From positions 2,418,001 through 2,482,000 of the forward strand of contig JBLDXI010000001.1 in the NCBI GenBank assembly GCA_047495785.1: 64,000 nucleotides of DNA, written 5' to 3'. The notes beneath the pieces were generated by a model. That model was not told the origin of the DNA. It searched no databases and worked only from the letters and a program-made list of their open reading frames with translations. This document shows positions 3,395-44,895 of this stretch, piece by piece; position 1 is the stretch's first letter; every line of letters begins with the position of its first letter. Source of the stretch: Lepidodermella squamata. Its lineage: Eukaryota > Animalia > Gastrotricha. Made by a program: the position numbers and the translations under genes.

Positions 3395-4430
3395 TAGCTA
3401 ATTAACTCAGTTAAAAACTTGAGAAAAAACCCTAGGATGACATTATTATTATTAATGTTATTTTGATTATTTTATCCGCGAAAGCTTTACGTCGCAATGA
3501 TTTTGATAAGTAAAAAATTCGTGCACGTAGACGTGGTTGTTATGTTTCGGAGATTCCCCAAAGCTATTTCGTAGAAAGATTCTTCACTGCACAAATTTTA
3601 GTAAGAATCGTGACCAAGAGGAGGAGCATGAACGTATCTTCTCGTTTGATCACTGCTGCAGCATGAAATACTCGCACTTCCGCGTTCTTGTGAGCGTCTC
3701 CGACGGCTGAAGTTGCCGCCTACCCTTTTGAGGCTGAAAATGTCGCTAAGGGTCACGACAAAACGTGCAATCATATTTTTCGTGGTAAAAGTATAACGCT
3801 TGATTTGAATGCTCCACTGATGATGTCTAAGCTTAGTATTCTCCTTGTCAGCAAACCGGAAGCGTGGAAGATGTCTATCAACATCGTCGAGGCGTGTTTT
3901 AAGAGTTTTGCTCCGAATTCGGAAAGGACGTTCATGTCTAAAACTGAGCTAGAGTGGCTCGGCGGAATTTACTTCAATGGAAAGCTGTAAGTTTTCCAGT
4001 CGGGAAAAGCATAAACGTCATACCCACGAACTTTCGGTTAAAATCAATGACGAAACGTGTCTATACAATCCACATATTATATGGTTTGAAATTTCCGAAT
4101 TTGTATGGAAATTTGCGAAGTGATGTCACCGAGCTCAGATGTGTATTGCTACCTCATGTGTCTCACCGAAGGAGAATCGGCTCTACTTTGGCCTCAATAA
4201 GTAAGATCGGTCAGAAGAATTCAGCGAGGTTCCTTGCAAGCTGATTCCATCAACATTGACTAGTATCGTCAAAATTAATTTCTAACGTACTAGCGTCCAT
4301 TTTTTACCTGCTGTTTTATTGCATAACAAAATGTACTGATGAACGACCTAATTAAGGCATACAGAGGGGCATACAACCACGCAGTAATGCTAATAATTAA
4401 TTCATTGTTTCGAGCTTTCTGTTCATTCTT

Positions 4431-7400
4431 TCAATAAGCAGCCGCCACCAGCAAGTATAGATTTATAGTTAGGAGGCATATCAGGCTGAAGAAGAAAACA
4501 ATTAGGTCAATCGCCCGAACGAGAGAAACAGGTGGCGAATTCTTCAGTAGAACGATAACAACGTTGCCCCTGACTAAAAACGGCTGGGCCAGGGCGGAGA
4601 CAACAATTTCGTAAGCTGTAATCATAGCTATCAGAGCAGATAGGAGGATGATGTAATTCGCATATAGGATTTGCTGCGAAGTTTCAGGAACGCTTTGCAA
4701 AACAGCTGCCTGAGCAACAATTAGCGATAACATCATCGTTCCACAAAATGCAGGTCTATCAGGCTCGAATGGAGCCATCATCAGGGAGCAAAACGCCAGA
4801 ACGATTATGATGTAACATGGGATCAATAGATTGACAAGGTAATAAGCGGGATTTCTTTGTAATGTGAAACGAATTCTACCATAGCTCATCGATGACAACC
4901 TTCGACTTGGTGAAGTTGTAGTGCCGAACTCCGTGCGAACATTGACCAGGTACCATATTTCGTTCGACAGTCCCCCTGTCGTTCTAGCGTAAATGCCACC
5001 AAAAGTCAGAAAATCAGCTGATTCATCGATGAGGAAAGTGTACTCGCAGGTCTGATGGTCAAATGGAAACTTCGCAAGGTCAAGCTTGCATTTCGATGTG
5101 AACGATCCGATTCGGTTCCAATGGAAAAACAGCGTGCGGTTGGGGCTTGTTGGGTAGTAAACAATCTCCATTTTCTCGCCATAGACCGGATTCGCCAGGT
5201 AGAAATCGGTCGACGTGTTGGCGAAAATTAGAGACGGGCGCCAGATGTCTTGTCGTTTCGCTGTAACAATTCGTTCTTTTTGGTCAACCGCAGGCGCTGC
5301 TACGTCATCCGAACACTCATCAACCATCCATTGCAGAAGGATCGAACTCCAAATTGTTATTTCTTGCGTCGATGGGCTGATGGATTGCAGGCCTTCTGCT
5401 GCGAAAGTCATATAGATTTTCGTGTTGGTGTCAGACGGCGATCTCATGTCGACACTAAGATACGTACAAGGCGCAAGGTCTTCGTACTTCAGAACCGGCC
5501 TTCGGTTCCCATCTATCAAAGGCGGTATGGGGAAGCCTGTCTCAGGATCTGAACCTCCTACAGTAGATGGCGAACTCGTCGATGAATTTGCGATGGTTTT
5601 AGCTATTGAAGTCATAGCCGTTGTCTTAGCTGTAGATTGAGTCGGTGGTGCGACGCCGGGGGTCAGTTGGAACAGATAACTAATAGCGCAAATTTCATTA
5701 AGGAGGACACTTTATAGAGATAATTGACACTCACAATTTCTCAGCAATGATACTTGCGTTGAACCCTAACATCCCATGCAAGTGCCAGATTCCGATGGGG
5801 TCTATGACATCGCTTATACCTGTTGCATCCACGTTGGAAACGCAAACTGCATTTTGGGAGGTCAGACTCAGCGGTAACGTAGCAATCGCCACCTAAATTT
5901 AAGAATGACTGATTCAATTTTGATATCATGCGATGAATGTTACAGTGATAATATCTTCAACGCATTGAACAATCAGTCGGTAGTAAGTTGTGCCAGTCAA
6001 AGGAAGTAAATCTGGAATGCCGCAAGATGGCTGCGACGTGCCAGTATAATTCAGTGGAATCGGCGTCGAATTATAGACAGTTGCGTAGGCTGGAGTGACG
6101 TAAACCTCGCCATAGCCGTAGCCGAGACGCTGCCAAACATGCAAACCATCATAGTTTGTCAACGAATCGAAATTGAGTGCGCCATTAGATTTAGCTAATT
6201 CGTTATTGATAAACAACACTCTTTTCCTTTCACAGAATCAAGTACCTTTTGTCCACGAATACTTGCTGCCAACGCTCAGTCCGAACCATGCATATGAACC
6301 ATCTGTTTTGTAAGTCACTCGCAAATCAACCTCAGCGCGCCATAGCGTATTCAGGATTCCCGGGCCGCCATACTAATTAAAATGTGGCGTTTTACACCTG
6401 AGAATCTTTGGATGCAAAAAATTACATTACTGTCCATTTGCCCATACGCAGTTGAACCCATTTTAGTCAGTTGGTACCCCTGGCTGGTACTTGTGGCCCC
6501 TGTCAAGCTCAGATCCATCGATCCAGTCACACTTGTGTTCACACGATCAAACGAAATAAAACTTCTGTACTTGGGCGTGCCTGAATAGTAAGTAGGCAGA
6601 GGCAGCGATACGGTGTCTGGAACCGGCGATATCGTTTCATTTAAAATCCAGAAGTAGCTATAATTTGTTCAAAAATGAAAAATTACTGATAATGGGTTAA
6701 ACAATCAATCTTACAATTTCTTCAATAGGATATCAGCATTTGACCCATTTGCCCCTATGAAGAAGGGTGAGTCATTGCCTTGTAGGCGTTGATAAGTCTC
6801 GGTCCATGCATTATAGTTTGTAACACACGTCGCTGGTGTGGTTTGTCCGTAGCCAGGGAGCGGGACGACTACAACCTAGAAACAATCCCTAGAATTGAGA
6901 AGGCTCTTTGAGAACAATGATTTTCATACTGTTATCCGTTCGTTAAGAGATTGAACGATCATTTTGTATTCAACTTTTCCTGAACTGTTGAACATGTCCG
7001 GACTGCCGCAGCCTGGCGTCGATATGTCGTTGAATGCAGGGGGTAATTGGGTGTGGAGGGCTCCGTTCTGATGCTTTATGTACAGGGTACCGCCAACTCC
7101 TACCTGTTGCCAGATGACCAAGCTGCCCAGCCATAGAACATAATCGTAAGGCTCAGTGTTTGCCGTTAGATTTGAAAAGTAACCTGGTGTAACATTCGCA
7201 AATTGTTGGTTAAAGCCTACAATGAAATTTTACCAGGTCTAGCATTCCAGCCGTTGATAGAAAAGCCAAACCAGGCACTACTGCCGTCCGTCTTGTAGTT
7301 AACACTCAATTCCATTTCGACTCGGTAATTTCCAGGTACGCGACCTTTAGCAAGATCTCTGCTCTTGAAAAATTAGACAGAAGGGACATTGTATCAACAA

Positions 7401-7710
7401 TTCATTTTTTATCAATTTTTTTTACCACAGCCAATCTGCCGAAAGTTGAGTTGGGCGTGTTAGGATTTGACATCGAAGTGAGTTGGATACCTCCCGATAC
7501 CGACTTTGCGGCATAAGAAGTCGAAGTCGGCGCTGTTGCGTCAATGTTCGCATTCTCCTTGTCAAACGATAGGTCATCAGCGTAAATGGGCGGTGAAGAA
7601 TACGCTGCAGGTAGGGGTAGGGAGAAGGTATCAGGAACGGGTGATACTGCTTCAGCCAACGGTACCAATTGAACCAACAGGCTGACGAAAATTCGCGTAA
7701 AATCTGTCAT
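4431..7710 (-). CDS. Cys-loop ligand-gated ion channel subunit with two tandem N-terminal extracellular domains and a Ser/Thr-rich linker (9 exons)
   Basis: Signal peptide at 7710. Eight short GT-AG introns join the upstream ORF fragments in frame to ORF 4431-5615, which has IWRP, Cys-loop CKLDLAKFPFDHQTC, R-x-P-x-YY-x-x-N-x-x-x-P before M1, and four TM helices. Confidence 0.85.
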
Positions 7711-8218
7711 TTTTGTCTCATTGAAAATGTTCGTAATGACGGATTGTCGCAGAATAACAGAAGCTCAGACATTGGCTCGTCCAAGAGCGCACTTTGGTTC
7801 ACTTCATAGATTGTTTAGCCATTAGTATCCAAGGAATATGAGCCTCGACTGCGCTGCTCAGACCTTATTGCGCCAACAGTAAGTAGTATACGGATAAAAA
7901 TAGTTGAATATTTACCAGGAATTTTCATAACATTAGCATTCTCCATGTCATTCTTTTCGGGAGCATATACTCGGGAGCGCATCATAGTCCACACGAGACT
8001 TTCCTCCTATTTTTCCTCCATATTCCATTTTCTCTCCCTATTGTAGTATCTAGTCCAGCGTTTGTTTACCCTTTTACCCTGCTTTTTTATGTGTCTGTCT
8101 GTATGTGATATAAAAAATCGATTATGAGTGCCCCTTCACTTAGTGTGAATATGCAAAAAAGATGCGTGTCTAGTAATTAGTCTAGTCATAAACACTGCCA
8201 TTTTTGTGATCGAGTCAC

Positions 8219-20896: not shown

Positions 20897-23161
20897 TTAA
20901 GCCAAAGGACATTGTGCAGGGTTGGCAATTCCTGGAACAGCGCACGCGATCGTTTTTTGAATCCAATCAGTATACGCCGAAACCGGGACAAAAATTGCCG
21001 GCTTTTGGGCAGCGCAGTCTGCACCCCGGCGAAGGTATATGCCGTACTGGATGAGAAAAATAATCATGGCTAATATCTGCAAGTTAGGACTCTCATACCT
21101 GAACCAAGCGCTCTCCAAGACCCCGCTTTTCATTTCCAGGCGCCTGAACAAGAAGGGGACTACCTTCGTCGCCCTTGCAGGGGACCGTTTTATCCTTATT
21201 GCTACTCACAAAGCACAAGTCGAATCCTGCTCTAAATTCGTCCGAGCTGTAGGCTTTCAAACAGACATCATCGTTTGGTCTCAATCCGTTGACATAACGA
21301 GGCAGGCCTGCACTAGTCATAGGCGAGCGGCCATTTTCACCCCAGCCTGGCACGAACTCATATTCGTCGAGGTTAACATCCTGCCCGGAGATGCAAATGT
21401 CGGAAACATAGGGATTGGTGAAGTCTGCAGGTAGCTTGAGTTGAACAAGTATGACTTGGCCATCGGCTGATTTGACGACATCCTGAATAGCATGAATTCG
21501 CTCGTGGCTCTCTACCACCATTGTGTCATGTTCACCGACGTAAGCTAAATAATGGGTAAAGTCGTAGTCCCCAGCAAAGCAACTCGCTGCTGTCAGGAGC
21601 CAATATTGGTCAATTATTGTTGCAGAGCAAATATGACGTCCGTTCAATCTCAAACTGACCAAGTAGGGGAATTGGCCTGGTTGAGGAATAACCGGGCTGG
21701 TTACGACCTTCGGGACAGGGGTCAAAGGCACCTTAGGGCTACCACATGGCGCGGAACTTTGGACAATGCGACACGCCTCAATCGCTTGCATGACTTCACT
21801 CTCGCTTAGAACGTCATTCCAGATCATCAGGCAGGACATGGCAATGCTTTGATTCTGACCGAGCCAATGTGAAGCTGATCCGGCTAGAAGGCCATTTCTG
21901 TTATAGACATTTGACGCCCAAATCAGTGGCTGAAGAGCTGGGGTTTTGAACAGGCCATGACGACCGAATACGCTAAACATCCCAGTCATTCCGTTGAAAG
22001 TAAAAGCCGCGAATGTCCAGCCTCCACCTTGCTGTATCATTTCGTACTTGGCAATTTCCATACTATTCGCCCGGAGGAAAATTTTTGTCCTTTCTTCGTA
22101 CCCAATCTGGAAACTATTTGCAGTCTTCCCAAACTGAAATAGGCCGCCACGATCCTGCTTGTCGATTTTTGCGAAGAATGCGACTGTGAACGAAGCTTCG
22201 ATGGCTAGCTTTGTGTTACTGACTGACAGCAATGTTTCCCCTTCTTGACTTTGCAGGGCTGTTTTCGGGTCACCGAATGGTCCTGCTACCAGGTTGGTAC
22301 CGCTTGCCTTTCCCTCGCCATTGAAGCTGTTCGGTCCAACATCTGATTGACTCGAAAGGGGCCAAAGTCCCACCAGATTTTGCGGTCGTGGCCAAGCATT
22401 TATTTGAGGAGGCTTGAGCCTGCCCGATGAGCACATCTCTGGGATTTTAGCGATATCTTCAGGGCTCAAAATGCTGTCGTATGCACTCAAGCATGAAATA
22501 GCATCTCCGTTGTACATATCTTGGTTTCCATTGTTCTGAAAAAGGAAGAAGCACGAATTTGAAAGCTATAAACTATAAGTAAATATTAACTCACGTTTGT
22601 GTAGCGACCAACAGTGATTACAATATCTGAAAACTGTACTTTCGTCTCAGCAGAAATTCGGAAATGCTGATTACCGGTTTTGCCAAAAACCGTAATGCTA
22701 TTTTTGACCTCGGAATATGTAATGGCGAAGAAATTCCACTCGTATGCTTTAACAATTTGCACAGCATCCTGTTTTACGGTGTAAACATAGAAAAACTGGT
22801 TCTTTTCAACTGAAATCGTCATCAGCGTCGCAGCAGTGCTTTTTAAGCTTAATTTCAAAGTCATTCTTTCGCGGGGGTAAGCATAAAATGCAACTGTCAA
22901 CTCTTGAGTATTTTTGATCTCGTATGTGCACATCCATTTGTTTGACTCAGCAACGGTGTAACTGGTATCCGGCTTCCCAAATGGTCCCAAGATTGAAGCG
23001 GGCTTATAGCTGTAAGTGTCTGTCGGAGGGCTGCCATCCACAATGTTGTTCAGCCGAGTGACATTGTCGAATGCTACCCACAAAACAGGCGAAGGATCTC
23101 CCGACACCAATCCGACCGAAAGCGCAAGTAGGGCGTGACACAAAAAATACGAAAAACTCAT
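20897..23161 (-). CDS. Secreted protein with two LamG/pentraxin-like domains and a trypsin-like domain lacking catalytic residues
   Basis: Signal peptide MSFSYFLCHALLALSVGLVSG. Two domains with GPFG..(F/L)TVAF..W(N/T)F.A.T(Y/F) patterns. Trypsin fold motifs FPYLVSL, HICSATII, LTAASC, CKGDEGSPL and YTDWI. Confidence 0.85.
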
Positions 23162-25388: not shown

Positions 25389-26700
25389 TCAGCGAGGAAA
25401 GATTGCCATGGCCCACCTTGTGCCACCACGATAAGAACCATCCTGGCATTCATTAAAACTGGTGCATCGAAACCACACCGCATTCGGGTTTCGTTCCATC
25501 CCTTCAGCTATTTGATCACTATGATCCTTGTGGCCTGGTTTGTACATGTTCAACCTCGCCCATTGTTCCAATTCGTCTGTTTCTACATCAGGCATGTGGT
25601 AACCAGCATGAGTTGTCCTAACAACGCTGAATTGCTTAACATTCGTTTGAGAGTGGCCAAAAATGATTCCTTGCGTTGAATAAGCCGTCCCGCTCGGGAA
25701 AGGCACGGGTAACATTATAGCAGCCCAGGTAATACCAAATTCGGTTAGAATCAGACACCAAGTAACTCGACCGATTTTATTGGGAACGTAAAGCCTTCCC
25801 CCGGCCATTTGAATACGCAAGTTCTCAAATTGGTGCCAAGCAGTAGCAAATGTCAGATTCTTGCGCGACACCCAATCGCGCTGTTTCAGTTGCTGCTCGA
25901 TGACATTTAGACGCGGGATAACAAGCAAATGGGGCTTGTCAAAAGGAATGTCGAAGTAAGAGGCGAATAAATAGCGGTCGAGAATGCCTTGGGTAATTGA
26001 ACGCTCGTTGAATCTATTGAAAATTTCAACAACACTGTCGTCGTGATAATCGTATTCTAAATCATGCTCAGAGCAGCGGAAATGTCGATAGCTATCTATC
26101 AAAAAGTCTCTCGCCACACGTTCCAAATAGTCAACATCCAGCCGAGGAGTGCTTAATTGGAGATTTTCACGAAACTTTGGCGGTCTGTAAAACTTTATTT
26201 GCGGCTCCCATCTCGTTAATCCAGTGATGTATTGAGTCTGTGGATTTTCAATATCTTGTAAGAGCCTCGTCCTGGCAGTAATTCCTAGGCATCTAGGCAC
26301 CGACTCCCCAATGTAAGCCATGTAGACTCGCTGAAATGCCAACATGTCGGCGCGGTTTTTGAACGTAAGGTTTAAAGCTGGTAAAATACCCCTGGAGTAT
26401 CGTAGGTTGAAGAAGGTGAGGTATCCTGGAGTTTCTTTTGGAGGTTTTGGAGTTTCTTCATGCGATGCCGTGTGAGATTGATTTGTCAAAAAGTAGGAAT
26501 ATACGCGATATCTCCTTCGAGCAATGATGTTTATGCTTCGGCTGTATTCGTTGTTCTTAACACTGACTTTGTAGCGAACACGTATTGCTGGAATTGGCTC
26601 ATTTCCAAAGTCAAAGCTACTCACGAGAACTTCAGCCACTGTCTGAAAAAGTTTCATTTTAAGCAAGCCCAACTGATTACAGCCTCACCGATAAAGCCAT
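25389..26700 (-). CDS. Uncharacterised protein, family X paralogue 1
   Basis: A 12-nt first exon (ATGGCTTTATCG, 26700-26689) splices to one long open exon. Homologous to 29698-30900. Confidence 0.8.
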
Positions 26701-26889: not shown

Positions 26890-28200
26890 TTATGAAACCA
26901 TTTTGATCCCATAGTAAGCTAGCGTAAAACAGCCGCAAAGTAGAGTACCCACTCCGACTATGAGATCTGCAAGTCTCACAATCCGTATTCCTCCTCTGTC
27001 GTTAAACCGCAACACAAGAAGCCTGCCGAACAGCTTCTCAGAGACACAACACGCCACTAAAGTGTACAAAGTGATCAGCAAGCAAATTATACTGAAAACC
27101 ATGACAATATTGATTAGGTACACCTCCTGCGCACTTTGAGGTATGAGTTGGAAAATCAACGTCAGTACTACAACCATTGCCAGATTAACAGTTACGCAGA
27201 ATGAAGGTCTATCGGGGTGCTGGGGATCCATTATTAGTGCTGAGATTTGTAGCAGAAACATGGAAATAGTCGGCAGAATCACATTTCCAACGTAATACTG
27301 GTACTTGCGCCGAATTGTTAGTGTCGCGGTAACATGGTGAAATTTTCCGATATTGTAGGTTGATCCGTTGTAGCTAACGAACTCCCAAATATCATCGTCT
27401 TGCAAAGGTACGTAGCCTTCAGAAATTCCGATTCGTTCGATATTAATGGCAACTTCGTTACTCAGATTTTCGTTTTCGAATTCGAAGGTGCAATAAGCGG
27501 TGTCAAATGGGAATTTCAAGTAATTAAAACCGAAGCACAGCGACGTGAATAAGCGAACGCAGTAGATTAGGAATCGAGGGCCTGTTGCCTGGAACGGTCT
27601 AACTTTAATAAGTCGTTCACTGCGGAAATCGAACAAAAGATTAGTTTTAGCTTGAGACTTAAGAGAGGATACCTTCTCAAAGGTCGTGATTCGGTGATAG
27701 AATTCAAATACTGCATATCAGGCCACCATACGGAGTCCGACGGAATCTCGAACTGGATTCTGTCGAGAGTTGACTGTGGAATCCTTTCATAATCATTCAT
27801 CAGTTCGTAGCGAATGTCTCTGCCACATGGGATGAGCCAATAAACCCGAAAGGCCATCGTTACTGTCATGCTGTTACCAAACCCATTTTTAGGTAATTTG
27901 CATTTGAAATCAATCTTACGTCATCGAAGCATCGCTGATGTCGTTGATTTGGTTGATGTCTGAAAGTAGGTAAGTTTGGATAGGACTGCTGTGATTCCCA
28001 CTTTGAAGGTGCCACTCTGTCGGCAGATTACTCGCCGTCGCTATCGGGCAAAGCCGAAAGAATGTATCCCTCATCTCATCGGTCTTGAGAGAAGATGGCT
28101 TAATCTCGAAAGCCGATGGCAACTCGTCCCAACATCTCACATCGATTACCAAAGTTAGGAGGAATGCACAGGGAAAAAGTCGTAGTTTCCAGTTACTCAT
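26890..28200 (-). CDS. Divergent Cys-loop ligand-gated ion channel subunit, 3 exons
   Basis: Signal peptide, VWWPD, Cys-loop CFGFNYLKFPFDTAYC, RRKYQYYVGNVILP and four TM helices. Confidence 0.88.
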
Positions 28201-28433
28201 AATTATTTTTAGCACCAAGTAAAAATAATAAAGAAAGATATACAAGTGGAGAGTAATGCGACATGTCCCTATGTGTATAACTGTGCCTTTGCACGATGAC
28301 ACTTGACAGACATTCCCACTTTACTTTTTACTACCGTGCCGCACCTTGATCCGTTGTAAGAGGACCAAAGAGAACCATTGTAAGAATATAGGTAGATACA
28401 TTCATGTTATTCTATCACTTTATTTTCTCTAGT

Positions 28434-29697: not shown

Positions 29698-30900
29698 TTA
29701 TGAAATTACTAGAGCCCAGTTTGTTTTAGCGCCTTCTTCGACCATGGCTGCTTCTTCAGGATGCACATTCAACTCAGTGCAACGAATCCAAAATGCAGAA
29801 CCCGATTTGTAGCTTGGAAGCGAAGTTCGCACAACGCCGAAGAATTTAGCATCAGCTTTTTTACCATCAATTTTGATTCCTTGAGTGTAGAAAGCTTCCA
29901 GACGCTCGAAAGTTGTTGGCAGCATAATCAAAGCCCAACTGACCTCGTTATCGCTTCCGAAGATTGCGCACCACTTCAATTGGCCTAAACCCTTAGGGAC
30001 AAAAGCGCCGCGTGTTGCCATCTTGCGACGCAAGGCCAGAAATTCCGACCAAGCTGATGACAACAAGCGATTATCGGGCGAGTCGGAGCTTTGAAGTTCC
30101 AGCTTTGGCACGGCATGCAAATGCGGCCTATTGAAAGGAGCAGAAACAAACGTTGGCATCAGGCTGCCTCTCAGAAATCCATTAGTGATCGTCTGCTCGT
30201 TGAACTTATTGAACAGTTTCACCGCTGCTTCATCGTCGTGTAAATCAATCAGGTCGCGATGCTTCGCACAACGCGTTGCTTGCAACATACTGCGCGTGCT
30301 TTCGATCAACATTCGATTGATGTGGCTGAAGTCCGCTGTTGGCAACTCAAGTCGTGATTCCGAGTCCGATCTTGATGGGTGGTATCGCTTGATAGTTATA
30401 GGTCTTTCATCAAACTTCGCTGGAGTTCTTCCGATGTGAAGGGCATCTCGGTCAGATGAGTTTCGCAAGTTGCCTGTGAATTTGTTCTCGCCAAGACAAT
30501 CGGGGAAAGCAGTTTCACCAATGTAATGATGAATCGCTCGATAAAATTGGGCTAAATCGCCAGCATTCCAGAATTGTAGAGTTATTTTCGGCAGTCGTTG
30601 ATTCGTTCGGCCAAAAGCACGAGTTTCGACGTGATGCACTTCCAGCTCCTTCCCAACAGGCAGCAAGAAAGAGTGTTCAGTTAGAGTAAAGGCCAAATCG
30701 CGCTGACCTTCCTGTGAGATTTCAATCATGCGATTGTAGCGACCTTTTACGATCTCGATGCTGTACGTCGCCATTACTCGACCCGGTTTATTCGCCATAT
30801 TTGTCACAGTAATTCCCACGATTTCCACATGAGCCAGTGCCTGAAATCAGAATTTGAGATAGCTTTTCAAGATAGCGAGTCAACTTACCCTGCGCTCCAT
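29698..30900 (-). CDS. Uncharacterised protein, family X paralogue 2
   Basis: A 12-nt first exon (ATGGAGCGCAGG, 30900-30889) splices in frame to ORF 29698-30828. Shares motifs with paralogue 1. Confidence 0.8.
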
Positions 30901-33417: not shown

Positions 33418-35077
33418 ATGGAGCGAATAATTCGGTTCGCCGTGCTTAAAAGATGGGAAATCTACGGATTCGTTGTTACAATTTTACTGCTTAAGATCTG
33501 TTGGAATGAGCGCCCATTAACTGCCCCCGAATCGCCCTCTTTCACCTCTATTGAAGTTCCTCCTAGTAATTTCGTCACAGACGGACCTGTGGACGATGTT
33601 CAATGTGACCCTGCCGAGTACTATCATGTCAGCCAGGATGAGTTTACGAAAATGGACCCGAAATCTCAATTCGCAGCTTGTCGCCAGCTCATTGACGCAG
33701 AAATGCATTGCACGACCGGAAAAGATAACGCCAGCAAGATTGCGTACTTCTCAAAGAATCAAGTTCCGATTCCTTTCAACGTTTTCGTTTCGAAAGGCCG
33801 CAATGACGCTGCGGAGGACGATCCTTGGTACGTCTACGTCATAGTCATGCTCTACGGAACTTGTTACGAACATGTATGGTACCTGGAGGGCTGCCGCTTC
33901 GGAAATCTCCGCCTTCCTGGCGAGTATTCGCAATGGTCTTACTATACTCAATGGCGAGCTATTTTGACGCTGCGGACAAATCAGCTAATGTTTCAGGAGT
34001 GTCAGCCCGTCCTAGATGAGAAGGGCTATGGGGATGAAAATGGTTATGACTCGATGTGGGTTATCGCTTTGAGATGCAAACTCCCCGCCACTATCCATAA
34101 GGTATGATTTATAGCATGATATTTCCGAGAGATTCTAACTTGGGAAATAGGACGACCTTCAAAGAGTTACTGTGCAAGGTTACTACACAGACGACGGTGC
34201 TTTGAGGTTCACAAGTTCTAACTTGCGAGTATGCAACCACGACAAGGTTATTCCTAATCGACTGAAACTGGCATCTTGCGCGCTGATAGACAACACCCAT
34301 CCATTCCACCATGTCATTGAATGGATCGAGTACCACCTCCTGCTTGGGATTCAACACTTTGTTTTCTACGTTAATGAACCGCCTGCTAGATATCGCGAAT
34401 TCGCCGCTCTGTTCAAAAAGCATGGCTATGACGACTTGGTGACCCTGGTGCCGATGTATGTCGCATTTCCAGAGTTACCTAAAGCGAGCGGATTCTTCCT
34501 ACAGGCAGTTATCAACAATGAATGCCTCTACCGAATGAAAGTAAGTTCGATATTGAAGAAAAGGCTATACAATTGCCTGTTTGAATATCCCAAGGATCGA
34601 ACTGACTGGCTGGCAGTTATGGACATAGACGAGTTCTTTCAGGTTTACGAAAGCCCGACTCTAGTCGATTTTGTCGAGCAGATACGTAATGGGTTGCCAG
34701 ATGTTGGCGCCATCATGTTCAAGTCGTGGTACTTCGGTCCCGATAACAAGAGCCATCCTGTCTCATTGGAAAAGCCATATTCCAAAATTACAGATTTCAC
34801 CCTTCGAATGGATTCGTTCATCGCGATTACTCGGGAGAAGAACATTTTTCGGACAGATAAAGCTCTGTACATGACAGTCCACTACTTGTCAGCTGGCGGC
34901 GAGTCGGTTTCGGTCGATACCATTGAGGAGGGCCGATTAGTTCATTATCGCGTTCCGACCATGGACTTTTTCGAAGAGGAGCGTTCTAATGGAACGCTAA
35001 AAATGGATAAAACCATGGCGGAAAAATTTGGTGAATCTGTGAGACGGAGGATGATGGACAGAGGCGTCAGGTTTTAG
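33418..35077 (+). CDS. Glycosyltransferase family 92 (DUF23) protein, copy 1
   Basis: N-terminal type II membrane anchor. Motifs EWIEYHLLLGIQHFVFY, INNECLYR and DWLAVMDIDEF (DxD). Two short introns. Confidence 0.85.
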
Positions 35078-35755: not shown

Positions 35756-37635
35756 CTACGCGATCATTTTAAGTCCGTAAACCAAGAGTGTAACCAGTCC
35801 GCAAATAAACGAGGCAATCGCAACAACCAAATCCGCCAATCGAATGATGCGAATGGCACTATTTTTGTGGTCATTAAGCCAGACAAGTCGCTTGGCGGTG
35901 CGCATATGTGCAATCGAACACGTTGCGAGTGTGTAGATGGTAATTAACACGCAAATGACCATAAAAGCGACGACGATATTAATGAGATACACCTCGGTCG
36001 CTGTTTGAGGAATCAGGTCGAAAATCAAGGTCAACATGACTGCAATTGATAGGTTCACTGTAATGCAAAACGTCGGCCTATCCGGGTGTTTCGGGTCCAT
36101 GATCAACGCTGATATTTGAAGTAGAAATAACGAGATGGTCGGTATGAAAACATTTGAGACGTAATATTGGAATTTTCGCTTCAAAGTCAACGTCGCGGTG
36201 ATGTGGGGATACCCGCCAGCAATGCGCTTTGAAGCGTTGAAGCCGATTAGATCCCAAATTTCGTCCCCTCTCAGAATTTCGAACCCTTCCATAGCGGACA
36301 TGCTTAGGACGTTTATCTCAACTTCTTCGTTTTGATTCTCATTTTCGAACTCGAACGAGCAAGATGAAATGTCGAAGGGAAACTTGACGTAGCTGAAGCC
36401 GTAGCAGAGGGCTTGAAGTAGTCTGAAGCTGTAGATCAGAAATCTGACTCCCAATCGATGAAAGGGCTGCACTTTGATGAGCCGCTCACTATTATCCCGA
36501 AAATAAAAATAAAATAAAATGGTTAAATACTGTAACGTCTGTCAAAAGGACATCAGGGCAACCTTAGACACTTCAAATTATGTTACTTCATCATCTTCTG
36601 TTTGATCGATTTTTTAAAATCCAAAGATCATCAGAATATCTTTCAGCGGAACCACTTTTCAAAATTTGGCACCGAATGCAACATTTTCGAATATTTTTAT
36701 CAATTTATAATTATGCGGTGTTCTCAATAATTCTGAAAATTATGATGAGAATTTGTCCAGAATATCGCGAAGAATTTTTATGATTTTATGAAAAATTTGG
36801 ATTATTTACAATTAAATCAGGAAATCCCCGAGCAAAAAATATTGAAAATTCAATTCAAATTTGGTTACGCTAAAAGTAAAACAGTTCCAAAATTAGAGTC
36901 TTCGAATCTTGAAATTCAGGGGTCCGTTGAATATGCAAATGAGCTTCTAAAATCAAAGCCAAAAGTCAACCATTTTTCGGTAAAAAATGGAAAAATTTCC
37001 AAATTTTGCAGGAAATTCAGGAAAATTAGTTTTCCCAAGTTTGGGTTAATTTTTTGATTTTCAACTGATTTTTGAACTTTGAAAAAAATGGTTATGTTCA
37101 AAGTTACGGTAACAAAATAGTAAGCAAAAGACGAAATCTCACTCTCTAAGGGGTCGCGACTCAGCCATTGTGTTGATGAACTGCATGTCTGGCCACCAAA
37201 CATCCACTGCTGGAATTTCAAATTGAAGCCTATCCAGCTTTTCTTGCGAAAGGTTCTGGTAGCCAGGGTACAAAGCTGATCTTATATCTCCATCGCAAGG
37301 TATTACCCAAGAAATTCGCAAATTTACCATGGCGGTCACGCTATCATTTATTATGAAAATAAAATTGACTAAAATTCATGGTAATTTTACCTCATAGATT
37401 CGTCGCTAATGTCGTCGATTTGGCTGATTCCAACCTCGATGTAACTCTGTATGGGGTCGTTGAAATTGCCAGTTTTCAAGTGCCACTCTGTCGGCAAATT
37501 GTTCGCCAAGGCGATCGGGCATAAATTGAAGAATCTCTCCTTCATTTCACCAGTCAAAGTTGTCACGTCATGGCTGGAAATTTCCGGGAAGAATGAGCTC
37601 AGAAGCAGCTGAGATACTATGAGAAAAGCAGCCAT
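35756..37635 (-). CDS. Divergent Cys-loop ligand-gated ion channel subunit, paralogue of 26890-28200
   Basis: Same exon structure. Motifs NLPTEWHL, VWWPDMQF, CYGFSYVKFPFDISSC and MDPKHPDRPTFCITVNL. Confidence 0.88.
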
Positions 37636-38381: not shown

Positions 38382-40605
38382 ATGCGACGGCCCGGCTGGC
38401 ATGTGGCTTCGAAAAAATGGGAAATTTACGGCATCGTGATGACTATTTTGCTGCTAACTATTCTCTGGAAAGATTATTTTATGCAACGAAAAGGTTACAA
38501 TTTAGTCTCCACCTCTTCCTTTGGTTCGAAGGAATCTGGTTATCTAGACGATGTTCAATGTGACCCTGCCGAGTACTATTATGTCAGCCAGGATGAGTTG
38601 AAGAAAATGGACCCGAAATCCCAATTCGCAGCTTGTCGTCAACTCCTCGATGCAGAAATGCATTGCACAACCGGAAACGACAACGCCAGCAAAATTGCGT
38701 ACTTCTCAAAGAATCAATTTCCGATTCCTTTCAACGTTTTCGTTTCGAAAGGTCGGAATGACGCTGCGGAGGACGATCCGTGGTACGTTTACGTCATAGT
38801 CATGCTGTACGGAACTTGTTACGAGGATGTTTGGATAGAAGATGGCTGCCGAAATGGGAATCTTCGCCTTCCTGGTGAGTATTCGCAATGGTCTTACGAC
38901 ACTCGGTGGCGAGCTGGCTTGTTGTTCGAGGACAACAGACAAGTTTATCAGGAGTGTCAACCTGTGCTCGACGAAAATGGCAAGGGTGATGAAGTGGGCG
39001 ACAACGATTCAGGATGGGTCATCACTTTAAAGTGTAAACTTCCAAAAAGTAGCAACAAGGTACAAGCTATTCTGACTGTTAACAAGTGAAAAGTTGGGTT
39101 TGGCGCATTTTTTCTATTTTCTTTCAAAAGTGTGGGACGATTCTTGGATTCCTAGATGTTCCTACTCAGTCTTCCTTGAGAATTTCGAATTTGCAAAATT
39201 TAGAAATCTTGTAGGCTCCCATCCACCTCAAAAGATGGGAGACCCTAAAGTTTCGCCGGAAAAGCTTATCGGTTCAGGCTGAAGTAGAAGCACGAGCTTG
39301 ATTCCATCAAAAAAAATTAATATCTGGCGGGATTCCTCACCTTAGGTTACCCTAACAAAATTTCGAGTGCGCATAAGAAAATAACATCAGAATTCATTGC
39401 GCGACGAATTATTAATTGATGCAATAATAATTAAAACTTTTAAGCGCGCGTTTTCAAAATTAGAACCCGTAAAATTTGAAGCCCATTTTCTCAGCAACTC
39501 TGATGGCTATCAGCCTCTTTTTGATATCGTTCGATTCCTCGCTCATTGATCTTGAAAGCGGCATCAAAATCTCACGATTTCGAAAATTTTGCCGAACCTC
39601 ACTTTTCAGTTGATAACGGTTCTATATTGGATATCTCTTTAATATTGAAAAATTGAGTAGGACGACCTTCGAAGAGTGACTGTTCAAGGCTTCGACAAAA
39701 CTGATGGCACCATGACACTTACAAGTTCGAACTTGCGAGTATGCAATCACGACAAGGTCATTCCTAATCGACTGAAACTGGCATCTTGCACGCTGATTGA
39801 CAATAGCCATCCATTCCACCATGTCATCGAATGGATCGAGTATCATCAACTACTTGGGATTCAACACTTTGTTTTTTATGTCAACGAACCGCCGGCTAGA
39901 TATAGCGAATTCGCCGCCTTGTTCAAAAAGCATGGTTATGACGACTTGGTCACCTTAGTGCCGATGTATGTCGCATTTCCAACGTTACCTAAAGCGAGCG
40001 GATTCTTCCTACAGGCAGCTATCAACCATGAATGCTTCTACCGAATGAAAGTAAGTTCGATATTAAAGAAAAGGCTATACAATTGCCTGTTTGAATATCC
40101 CAAGGATCGAACTGACTGGTTGGCAGTTATGGACGTCGACGAGTTCTTTCAGGTCTACGAAAGTCCGAATCTAGCTGATTTTGTCGAGCAGACACGTCAT
40201 GACATGCCAGATGTTGGTGCCATTATGTTTAAGGCTTGGTATTTTGGCCCTGGGAACGAAACTTACGATGTTTCATCAGAAAAACCGGGATTGAAAATCG
40301 CTGATTTGACCCTCCGGATGGATTCTTTCATCGAAAACGGCCGGGAGAAGAACATATTTCGGACGGATAAAGCTCTGTACATGACGATTCACCACTTGTC
40401 GGCCGGCGGGAGAGTTCACATTGTGGATGCGGTTAAAACAGGCCGTTTAGTACATTATCGCATTCCGACTATGTACTTCTTTGACGAGGAGCAATTTTAC
40501 GGCAAGCTGAAAATCGATAATTCTATGGCGGAGAAATTTGGCGAATCTGTGAAACGGAGAATGATGGATAGAGGCGTGAATCTTCAGCTAGATGCGAATT
40601 TCTGA
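38382..40605 (+). CDS. Glycosyltransferase family 92 (DUF23) protein, copy 2
   Basis: Close paralogue of 33418-35077. Intron 1 is enlarged by a MITE. Confidence 0.85.
39074..39621. mobile_element. MITE family 1, copy 3, in GT92 intron 1
   Basis: GACTGTTAACAAGTGAAAAG..CTTTTCAGTTGATAACGGT, homologous to copies 1 and 2. Absent from the matching intron of GT92 copy 1. Confidence 0.85.
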
Positions 40606-40823: not shown

Positions 40824-43800
40824 TCATTTTTCGGCGAGAGCAGATTTTAACATTTCCGAAATCGATTCATTTTCGGAAGGAGTCGAATTTATCGAAGCTT
40901 TGATCAAAGCAGTACGTTCGTCTTGACTGACGGCTAAATTGGGACATTCCAGCAAAAATGCCACAATATCCTCATTTTCATTCGAACAAGCCAAATGCAA
41001 AGCATGCACGCCATCTTTTGTCCTCGTCGATATGGCGGCGCTATTCCGAGAGTAGAGCATCTTCAAAATTTCGAACTTACCCTCACTCACCGCGAATAAA
41101 AACGGTGTTTTCCCGGTAGCATTATCGGTTTGATCAATCAGCTGCGGATAGCGATCGGCGAGAAATTGAGCAATCTCTAAATGATTATTTCGCACGGCTA
41201 TTGTTAGATTGTTACAACCATTTACGTCCTGCAACTTCGCGACTTCACTCGGTGATTTTGAATGAAGAAATTTCACGATTTCAATAGAGCCGGATCGACA
41301 CGCATAAGTGAACGCTGTTTGGCCTGATTTGTTCCGAGGTGCGAAATCATCCGGTTGTAGTTTAGCCGCTAGAAATTTGACTATCCCAACATCGCCATTA
41401 CCAGAAGCAGCCATTAAAGGAGTGAAGCCGGCCGAATTCGGTAGATTGATCGATTCAGGCCATCGATCTAGCAGCAGTTCGACCAGTTGTTGCAGGCCAC
41501 TTTCCAAGGCAAATAAAATAGCTGTTTGGCCTTTTTTATCTACAACCTTAACGGTATCGGGCGATTTTTCGCATAAATATGCGCAAATTTCAAAATGGCC
41601 CTTTTCCGCAGCTGCCATTAAGGCGGATTTTCCATTTTTATCGACTTGATTAACCAGATCCGAATTTTTCGCGAAAAATAACTGAACAAGAGGTAAATGG
41701 CCATTTTCAGCGGCTAGGTATGGGCTATTCGCCCCGTTCGAATCGACCGATCTCAACATTTCAGGGCAATTTTCGAGGAAAAATTCCGCAAGTGGAAAAT
41801 GGCCGTTTTTAGCCGCGTGCATTAGGCAATTCTGCTGTTTCGCATCGACCAATTTAGCCGCCTGATTGTTTTCTTTGAACAGCCAAGTGGCGATGTCGAG
41901 ATGCCCGCCGATCGTAGCATGACTCATCGCAGTTAATCCATCTGAATCTTGAAGTGAAGCTGAGTCAGGCTGCGATTTATATAGCTCGCGAACTATTTCG
42001 AAATGGCCATTCATCGCCGCGTAAATCAGCGGCGTTTCGCCGAAAAAGTCTTGCAGAGCAATCAAGGTGCGATCGATTTTCGGTAGGAGAAATCGAACAA
42101 TTTCAACATGGCCGTTTTCCGCCGCGTAGCTCAAAGCACTTCGTCGTTCGAAGTCCAATAAATCGACGCATTTTGGGCTCGATTTCGATAGAAATTCAAC
42201 AATTTCACGATGGCCGTTTTTCGACGCGTAAATTAAAGCTGTTCGGCCTTCTACGCCCTCTCGGCAGATCGATTCGCCACGGTTCGGTGATTTTTCGAGT
42301 AATTTCTGTAAAATTTCGAATTTTCCCAACCTAGCTGCGATGATTAGAGCTGAATCTATGCAGTTTTCCTCGCAACTATCAGCCGTAATTTCTGCAATTT
42401 TTCCGGAATTTTCTAGAATTATTTGAATAATTCTGTTGTTAGGTGTTTGATTCGCCAGCCATTTCTCCTCGTCATACTCGAATTTCCAGGGGTTAATTAA
42501 CCGCTTAATAGGCTTCCTTTCGTCGAAATAAGCCGCTCCTCCGTCGTAGATTTCAAAAATCAGCGAATAATTCTTCACCGGATGCTTTTCGCGAAGAATC
42601 GAGATGAAATTCAAATTTTCAGCTTTCAGCTTCGTCAGCAGTTTCGCAACCAGCCGATACGAATGATTGACCCCGCCATACATTCGCTTGACATCTTTCG
42701 ACGTGACATTATCGTCCCATTCAGCGTTGTAAAGATGATGAAGCAAAGTCGCGCCATTCGTCAATTCCTTCGATTTTGAACCGAAAATCTCCAATAATTC
42801 ACAGCCACGTAAATTTCGAATTATTCGCTCGAGTAAAATTCGACTCTGGTGTTTTACCGCCTCGCAAATTATCGAAATTCGATTAATTGATGGGTTCTTA
42901 GTTTGAACGACAAACATTTCTCCAGTTAAAATTTTAAGGCGGATAAAATTCAAAAATTCGTGATAATCCGTTGTAGCTTCGTCGATTTTGTACTGTTTCC
43001 TGGAAATTTCCAACGCAGCTTCGTGAAGTAATTGATGAACAACGAAACGAAGACCTTCCTCAGCTGAATCGTTGGTTGATTTCGAAAATTTTCTCGCCAA
43101 GCATTTTTTCTCGAACATATTGCACAAAGCGGCGCCTTTAATTTTGAAATCACTGCCGGTAAAGCCCCACAAAATTGCGAGATCTTCGACTGGAACAGGT
43201 TCGGCTGGTTCGAAAAATAGGAAGGCTAAATAACTTTGCCGTAATTTCGGCTCCAATCTCGAGACTCCAAGCTCGAAAGCTTGCATCAAGGCTCCGAGCT
43301 GGTTATTGTCTATATCTGCCGCCAAACTGCTGATTTTTTCGTTCATAATCGCTTGAAATTCGCCGTCAATGTCCCAACATTCTTCGAATCTAGCCGCGAT
43401 AAGACTCGCAATCAGCGGTAGCCGGCAGCTTCGTTTCGCTAATTCGTCGATTTTCGAATGGCTTAATTTGTTTGATAATTCAAAAGTTTTCGCCAGCATT
43501 CGGGCGATTTCGCCGTCGGTCATTTCTTCGATGGCGTGGATTTTCCGGACGACTCGGCGCGCTGCCAAATCACGAGCTATCGCCAAGTATGCAGCATTCG
43601 GGCACTGTTTAAAGATTGATTCGAGAATTTTCGGGTTGTAAACGTCGTCCAATATGAAAATCAGCCGCCGTTCTAGTTTACTTTCAATAAAATCGACAGC
43701 GCTGTCGAGTTCAAAAAATTTCGTTGCCGAATCTCCGATTGCTTTCTGAGTTAGATTGAGCAGTTTTGAGGTAAAGGCTTGTTCCGCCGTTGAGTCGAAC

Positions 43801-44895
43801 GCGTTTGGGTCGTGCCATTCGAAACAATTTAGCCAGATTGCAATGCTGATTTGGCACTCGCGTTGGAGAAATTCTTGATGGGTATCGTCCATAAAAAGTC
43901 GAGCGATTAGGCTGGTTTTGCCACTCCCACCCCCTCCAGTTACAACCACAATTCCTATCACAGAGAAAAAATCGTATCTGTTATCCAGTAAGCCCAATAA
44001 TTGGGTAAAAGGGTCTGATCTACAATATTCTACAAATTTTAAAAAATTTAGTAAATTTTAAAAAATTAAATTTTGAATTTTAAAATTTTGGTACCTAAAT
44101 ATAATTTTTGAAAAATTAAATTTTGAATTGAAAAATCTGCTAAAATTGAATTATCCCCAAATAAGATCCACTGAAACTCCAGTGAATTTTTTTATTTTTT
44201 TCCAATTTTCTAAAAATTGTTCAAATTTTTTTTTTAAATTAATGCTAAGTCACATACCATCTTTTGGCTTGGCTGAAATTTTTTTGATTTCTTCCAGAAT
44301 TTTATCTTCCTCGTCCTTTCGAGGGAAGTATCTCGCAAAACATGGGACATCGATCGATTTAAATTTGAAAATGTGTCTATTATGTTGAACTGAGCTGGGC
44401 CGGTTCGATTGATCTTCGGATGAATCAGGCCTCGCGCCTCCGAGTAGCAGCTGAATTTGTTGAAGAATCATCACCGCAGACCGGTCAAAGTCGGTGTCTT
44501 CGGAAAAATCGACCCAAAGCCTAGGGCCTAGAACCATACCGAGCCAGCCATTCACTGCGGTGCTTTTCTGAACTCGAATCGGGAGTAGATTTTTCTTCTG
44601 CATAGCTGCGTATTCAGCCTCACGCTTGCAATTTTCACTTGATTTGTAGTCATCGGAGAAAAATATTAGAACCAGGTCTGATTGATCGATTCCCTATTCG
44701 AAAAATCAAAGGATGCAAATCTCGAGAAATTAAAAGGATTATTTTTACGTTTGCCATAGCTTCAAGTGTGGAACCAGCCATTTCATTCGTATCTATCCAT
44801 ACGTTGTAGCCTTTTGTGGCTAAAAATTCAGCCATTTTTCGGACATTTTCGACTCGTTGTTTCCAACTGTAGCTGATGAAAAGCTTGGCTGACAT
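40824..44895 (-). CDS. TIR - NB-ARC (STAND ATPase) - ankyrin repeat protein, NLR-like, 3 exons
   Basis: TIR motifs LFISYSW, VWID, FSDDYKSSENCKREAEYA and GWLG. NB-ARC motifs Walker A GGGGSGKT, Walker B IFILDDV, RLPLIA and VHQLLH. About 14-15 ankyrin repeats. Both introns join in frame. Confidence 0.9.

Follow-up and report, generated by a model that had tools for sequence, protein, structure and literature searches.

A predicted Cys-loop channel gene with two tandem orphan extracellular domains in the gastrotrich Lepidodermella squamata

The window analysed here is a stretch of 64,000 nt from the gastrotrich Lepidodermella squamata (assembly GCA_047495785.1, contig JBLDXI010000001.1, positions 2,418,001 to 2,482,000 of the forward strand). 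Near its start lies a minus-strand gene for a predicted pentameric ligand-gated ion channel (pLGIC) in which the channel is preceded by two tandem extracellular domains, referred to below as heads. Joined together, nine exons give one uninterrupted frame of 948 codons, running from bp 7710 to 4431 of the window (Table 1). The eight introns were 50–62 nt each, and all had GT-AG ends. An earlier note on this DNA had already described one spliced gene at this position, and this was retained; the six fragments from which it had been assembled are in fact nine exons, eight small and one large. The next upstream gene, on the same strand, encodes an M13 peptidase and ends approximately 900 nt ahead of the start codon. 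In addition, an upstream open reading frame (ORF) of five codons (ATG AGA CAA AAA TGA) was seen at bp 7711–7725 on the minus strand, overlapping the start codon of the gene.

Based on hydropathy, residues 1–21 form a signal peptide with the cleavage motif AEA|VS, and this is followed by head domain 1 (approximately residues 22–279) and head domain 2 (residues 280–536), each of about 257 residues. The two heads were 34% identical over 261 residues (E 1e-37). Within each copy the introns have phases 0, 1, 0 and 2, and their positions match within 0–2 alignment columns. Because both the phases and the positions agree between the copies, the two heads go back to a unit of four exons that was duplicated in tandem within the gene. 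No internal repeats were found within either copy. One Cys pair is kept per head (197/240 in domain 1 and 454/497 in domain 2), and 11 of the 13 N-glycosylation sequons fall at or before residue 564. Between head domain 2 and the channel lies a linker of 45 residues, which is predicted to form a mucin-like stalk of the O-glycosylation type. The signal peptide, the internal duplication and the Ser/Thr stalk had all been proposed in the earlier note and were borne out by these results; every motif pair that it quoted between the heads was present in the translation.

The channel part is encoded entirely by the last exon. Its extracellular domain matched Pfam Neur_chan_LBD (PF02931) at 38.3 bits, above the curated cut-off of 26; Neur_chan_memb gave no reported match in the Pfam scan of the pieces of the gene. 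Among the PDB sequences, 173 matched the channel at E ≤ 0.001. The best of these were nicotinic acetylcholine receptor (nAChR) subunits, aligned through M1–M3, and GlyR, 5-HT3 and ELIC chains could be aligned through the same segments. The Cys-loop, C730-KLDLAKFPFDHQT-C744, is of the form C-x13-C with FPFD (bp 5046–5090), and is invariant in the relatives described below. Four hydrophobic helices were found at residues 809–948, with an M3–M4 loop of only about 20 residues. An AlphaFold2 (AF2) model of the channel exon, built on an alignment of four sequences, also showed four helices in its secondary structure, at low confidence (predicted local distance difference test, pLDDT, 44.8). These results agree with the complete pLGIC that had been read from the sequence earlier. 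With the conserved PETS motif that follows M2 as the point of reference, the pore-lining residues are P-2', D-1', R0', T6' and L9'. An acidic residue at -1' in the pLGIC selectivity filter points to cation preference; since the acidic -1' residue here adjoins R0', the sequence suggests that the pore is cation-preferring. Judged from its sequence, the gene is a member of the Cys-loop receptor superfamily; pentamer formation and a ligand-gated conductance of its product are predicted.

Word-based searches, in a collection that does not contain the gene's own protein, yielded only four near relatives of the channel, with 30–33% identity. These came from two metagenome assemblies in ENA (proteins P0001, P0002 and P0013; loci L001, L002, L020 and L021, all on metagenome contigs). 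At all four loci the frame stays open beyond the called start, upstream, for a further 136–217 or more residues, 60–78% of which are Ser, Thr or Pro, before it runs off the end of the contig. This mucin-like stalk sits at the position homologous to the linker of residues 537–581. The genes called there on the minus strand (L001 3–332, L002 1–558, L020 1–378 and L021 3–533) are artefacts, the plus strand carrying the in-frame Thr/Ser/Pro stalk. Because the frames of the four nearest relatives run upstream into a stalk, the stalk-plus-channel layout is a property of the subfamily, beyond this gene alone. Shared features are PNRTLFF-W, the TGFP pre-domain motif, the P-(D/E)-R pore entrance, the short M3–M4 loop and the in-frame Ser/Thr/Pro stalk. 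The pore entrance of the metagenomic channels is P-E-R, whereas that of the present gene is P-D-R. Their stalks are also much longer than the 45 residues found here, with contigs that end within the stalk. Seventeen more distant metagenomic pLGICs were examined as well. In the six with the 5' region present (L003, L004, L006, L009, L013 and L018), a signal-peptide-like hydrophobic stretch directly precedes the binding domain, and none has a stalk.

No family could be assigned to the heads. Searched at E ≤ 10 as exon pieces of 42–95 residues, rather than as whole domains, the eight pieces matched no Pfam family, and there was no profile match to families of the concanavalin A (ConA) clan (Lectin_legB, Lectin_leg-like, Laminin_G, Pentaxin and others). 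Profiles of all four exon pairs gave only noise against PDB sequences. Motifs of exons 1 and 5 gave 169 pattern matches in JGI metagenomes, none of which was confirmed. The motifs of exons 2 and 6 had no matches in bacterial and archaeal genomes, so that nothing points to a donor among prokaryotes. The N-terminal part of 575 residues had no tblastn match at 19 loci of metagenomic pLGICs, and the upstream regions of L020 and L021, read by eye only, showed no similarity to the heads. A LamG_3 domain encoded elsewhere in the window (bp 21,093–22,517) showed no similarity to the heads by blastp, and an hhalign probability of 0.2%. A language-model search with the exon 1 piece returned DUF3047, Calreticulin, DUF1349 and DUF1961 among its weak matches (scores of 0.80 or lower; leads only); we take these four families to be ConA-like by Pfam clan. 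For the exon 3 piece AF2 predicted strands only (pLDDT 40.6). On this sequence evidence the head domain is without detectable relatives, and may represent a new family. Two sets of candidates were rejected. The nine matches of the exon 3/7 profile among 1.84 billion representative proteins were composition artefacts, being long, repeat-rich and matching many unrelated Pfam families. The methyltransferase matches of the exon 3 piece in the ESM Atlas were noise, probably from a GxGxG-like motif.

Expression and variation were assessed from an RNA run (X1) and a DNA run (X2). In X1, 23 of the 28 contigs were at least 99% alike, and exons 1–4 and 8–9 were thinly covered. One contig skips exactly bp 6876–6929, which is intron 3. 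Introns 1, 2 and 8 were approached through the spacing of the 'opposite strands' joints in X1, each of which is taken to link the two mates of a single cDNA fragment. Nine joints within exons were 83–118 nt apart (mean 104, standard deviation 10). The five joints across predicted introns, two over intron 1, one over intron 2 and two over intron 8 (between exons 8 and 9), were 145–192 nt apart, and 90–130 nt after subtraction of the intron (Mann-Whitney p 0.0005). The spacing thus indicates that introns 1, 2 and 8 are also removed from the RNA. Three break points of X1 contigs lay exactly on predicted exon ends (7426, 7234 and 5679), which fits spliced templates.

In X2 a second copy of the gene, 5–10% diverged, was present at equal depth. 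Such a copy points to either very high heterozygosity or the retention of a duplicate. Over head and channel exons, 33 exonic differences were listed between this copy and the gene, 25 synonymous and eight non-synonymous, four of the latter within the signal peptide. Without selection a synonymous share of roughly one quarter is expected. Because the 25 of 33 observed far exceeds this, the gene is judged to be under purifying selection, head exons included. Four of the five listed indels were located in introns or upstream of the start; the fifth was an insertion of 2 nt in exon 5. This insertion, at bp 6445, was present in one X2 contig (45 of 170 depth), and may mark a frameshifted allele or a paralogue. 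Taken as a whole, the gene is real and its architecture well supported, and the continuity of its transcript is indirectly supported.

In the structural literature, N-terminal add-on domains are stated to be absent from eukaryotic pLGICs (PMC9897478). In the genome of the American lobster, 66 Cys-loop channels were reported to bear domains of the C-type lectin, pentaxin or LDLa type (PMC8221624, Polinski et al. 2021), a feature that the authors thought unique to lobster and related crustaceans. That paper is the sole published exception that we found, and it is without functional follow-up. Arthropod clusters in the ESM Atlas carry the same combinations, with Pentaxin, LDLa or Lectin_C joined to Neur_chan_LBD; the one tie of the present channel to this class is an indirect structural one, by way of an Atlas hit. 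The novelty of the architecture put forward in the earlier note was overstated, as crustacean add-on channels were published in 2021 and are annotated in the Atlas. With the crustacean chimeras of immune-type domains and ligand-gated ion channels (LGICs) the gene shares an animal Cys-loop channel and extracellular recognition-type domains before the ligand-binding domain. The crustacean channels are an expanded family and are functionally uncharacterised, as is this gene. In its domain content it differs from them, having two tandem copies of an orphan domain, joined through a mucin-like linker. The domains that define the crustacean class, CLECT (PF00059), Pentaxin (PF00354) and LDLa (PF00057), were not detected in this gene by the Pfam scan.

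A second comparison is with DeCLIC, a multidomain pLGIC of Desulfofustis, in which two tandem jelly-roll lobes influence the gating kinetics (PMC9897478). In both, each subunit has two tandem domains on the N-terminal side of its canonical extracellular domain, and an intracellular domain that is short or absent. DeCLIC, a bacterial protein, lacks the Cys pair in its Pro-loop and carries its lobes packed directly on the extracellular domain, whereas the present gene is spliced and eukaryotic and encodes a Cys-loop protein that has a flexible Ser/Thr stalk as well as a signal peptide and glycosylation sequons. Between the heads and the DeCLIC lobes no similarity of sequence was found. Because the Cys-loop is present, the gene is spliced and eukaryotic, and a Ser/Thr linker of 45 residues intervenes, it is not a DeCLIC-type channel. 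With nAChR, 5-HT3, GlyR and GABA-A receptors it shares the beta sandwich of the binding domain, C-x13-C with FPFD, M1–M4, the 9' Leu and the WxP motif of loop A. Relative to these canonical receptors it has approximately 20–25% identity, an M3–M4 loop of about 20 residues against 70–250, and an N-terminal extension of 560 residues. Its loop C lacks vicinal Cys, and one further conserved Cys pair is found near the start of the binding domain. The gene is best filed among animal Cys-loop channels that carry extracellular add-ons of the recognition type, here an orphan duplicated head and a mucin stalk.

We consider it probable that the locus is one gene for a stalked-head pLGIC subunit, with the heads serving as a binding or tethering module. 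As far as the sequence shows, this is a subunit of type-I style, in which a cleaved signal peptide precedes two beta-rich heads, the Ser/Thr linker and a Cys-loop channel with almost no intracellular loop. Five subunits would then assemble into a channel topped by ten glycosylated heads, held on flexible stalks. The heads might bind an extracellular macromolecule or a glycan-rich surface, and so either hold the channel at a matrix or surface or gather a ligand that is glycosylated or particulate. As the main alternative, they may modulate gating from above, as the N-terminal lobes of DeCLIC and the amino-terminal domains of glutamate receptors do. Opening itself would still depend on the binding pocket of the channel and on its 9' Leu gate. 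A role in tethering or capture is favoured over rigid packing because the linker is flexible here and the stalks are very long in the relatives; the glycan- or matrix-tethered sensory channel suggested in the earlier note stays a reasonable hypothesis. The gene would belong to a lineage-specific subfamily of stalked pLGICs, and itself arose by internal duplication of the four-exon head unit.

Several points weigh against this interpretation. The X1 RNA coverage is very low and is absent over exons 5–7, and no X1 read or contig crosses the junction of exons 8 and 9 directly. The spacing argument depends on the mate-pair interpretation of the 'opposite strands' joints. A secreted isoform with two heads is conceivable through retention of intron 8, which would lead to an immediate stop after …EKL. 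Ion selectivity is predicted from three residues only. Finally, the flexible linker of 45 residues argues against a rigid allosteric coupling of heads and channel.

If the fusion were an artefact of the gene model, exons 1–8 would encode a secreted two-domain protein and exon 9 a separate, adjacent channel gene. The missing contig across intron 8 and the tidy secreted protein that its retention would give are consistent with this, and a contig across two genes would in any case prove no single transcript. Exon 9, however, has neither a signal peptide nor a plausible start of its own, its first Met opening a polar Ser/Thr stretch. The gap between exons 8 and 9 is only 55 nt, with GT-AG ends and a compatible phase, and contains no AATAAA polyadenylation signal. 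In addition, two X1 joints are spaced as if intron 8 had been removed, and the nearest relatives also run in frame upstream of the binding domain. We therefore regard two adjacent genes as very unlikely. Still further from likely, in our judgement, is a decaying or non-functional lineage-specific duplicate, a pseudogene in the making. The 2-nt insertion in exon 5 of one X2 contig and the very low RNA coverage would fit decay; the frame of 948 codons is intact, the splice sites are canonical, variation is heavily skewed to synonymous sites and spliced RNA is present.

For the heads themselves, it is possible, with more doubt than confidence on our side, that they are ConA-like jelly rolls of the L-type-lectin, pentraxin or LamG type that bind carbohydrate, the gene being a divergent counterpart of the crustacean pentaxin/lectin-LGIC chimeras. 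Domains of about 255 residues with a beta-biased composition and no internal repeat, the strands-only model of the exon 3 piece, the ConA-like families among the language-model matches of exon 1 and the arthropod clusters that join such domains to Neur_chan_LBD all point in this direction. On the other side, all Atlas scores were 0.80 or lower, a low level of recognition, no exon piece had a Pfam match at E up to 10 or a match among PDB sequences, and hhalign gave almost nothing against the LamG_3 domain of the window. The heads could instead be an autoinhibitory or modulatory cap, packed on the binding domain and tuning the gating; DeCLIC, with its effect of two tandem lobes on gating kinetics (PMC9897478), likewise has two lobes per subunit. 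This seems unlikely, as the Ser/Thr linker here, and the hundreds of mucin residues ahead of the channel in the relatives, fit a flexible tether better. An origin independent of the crustacean lectin-LGICs, in which a head of new fold on a mucin stalk is the primary sensor and the channel is gated when a surface, particle or glycan is bound or the tether is pulled, is given a similarly small chance.

Were the head such a sensor, the protein would be a contact- or glycan-gated ionotropic receptor. As a second, unrelated set of add-ons, the stalked heads would make the bolting of recognition modules onto Cys-loop channels a recurrent evolutionary move. The gene, with its minimal intracellular loop and single large channel exon, offers a compact test case for tethering, ligand capture or gating by heads, and the subfamily also occurs in environmental samples.

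Table 1. Exons and other features of the stalked channel gene, in window coordinates.
Feature	Position (bp)	Strand	Content and evidence
Exon 1	7426..7710	-	Start codon, signal peptide, first part of head domain 1; covered by X1 RNA contigs
Exon 2	7234..7363	-	Head domain 1, YKTDGSSAWFG motif; ends in phase 1; gene model
Exon 3	6930..7183	-	Head domain 1; conserved Cys197, GCGSPD, YKMIVQ; gene model
Exon 4	6715..6875	-	End of head domain 1; conserved Cys240; ends in phase 2; gene model and X1 RNA
Exon 5	6426..6657	-	Last residues of domain 1 (KKFYF) and start of head domain 2 (SPVPDTVSLPLP); synonymous-biased X2 variants
Exon 6	6246..6372	-	Head domain 2; YKTDGSYAWFG; gene model
Exon 7	5944..6194	-	Head domain 2; SCGIPD, YRLIVQ; gene model
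Exon 8	5735..5892	-	End of head domain 2; ends in phase 2; covered by X1 RNA
Exon 9	4431..5679	-	Last residues of domain 2, linker, whole channel, stop codon
Ser/Thr-rich linker, residues 537–581 (45 residues)	5535..5669	-	40% S+T, 11% P; short mucin-like stalk (predicted)
pLGIC extracellular ligand-binding domain, residues 582–808	4854..5534	-	Pfam PF02931, PDB matches, alignment with relatives
Transmembrane domain M1–M4, residues 809–948	4434..4853	-	Hydropathy; alignment to Torpedo nAChR M1–M3
AATAAA polyadenylation signal	4315..4320	-	111 nt past the stop codon; read from the sequence

The remainder of the 64-kb window, in which no tRNA genes or Rfam families were found, contains several other genes of related or unusual type. 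Two further pLGIC genes are located at bp 26,890–28,302 and 35,756–37,635, both on the minus strand. They are of the short-loop type, each with its own signal-peptide exon and without head domains, and have a C-x14-C loop, not C-x13-C. Paralogous, putatively orphan ORFs of 376–427 residues (bp 25,389–26,672 and 29,698–30,828, both minus strand) are interleaved with these pLGIC genes. The LamG_3 domain compared above (Laminin_G_3, ConA-like) is part of a minus-strand ORF of 474 residues (bp 21,093–22,517), which also contains a trypsin domain. An intronless ORF of 1057 residues (bp 40,824–43,997, minus strand) has a weak match to an NTPase of NB-ARC/NACHT type with a long array of ankyrin repeats behind it, a layout like that of NLRs. 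Finally, a near-identical pair of ORFs on the plus strand (bp 34,172–35,077 and 39,676–40,605), judged by eye to be similar to glycosyltransferase family 92, flanks the second pLGIC gene, and this segment seems to be a local duplication.

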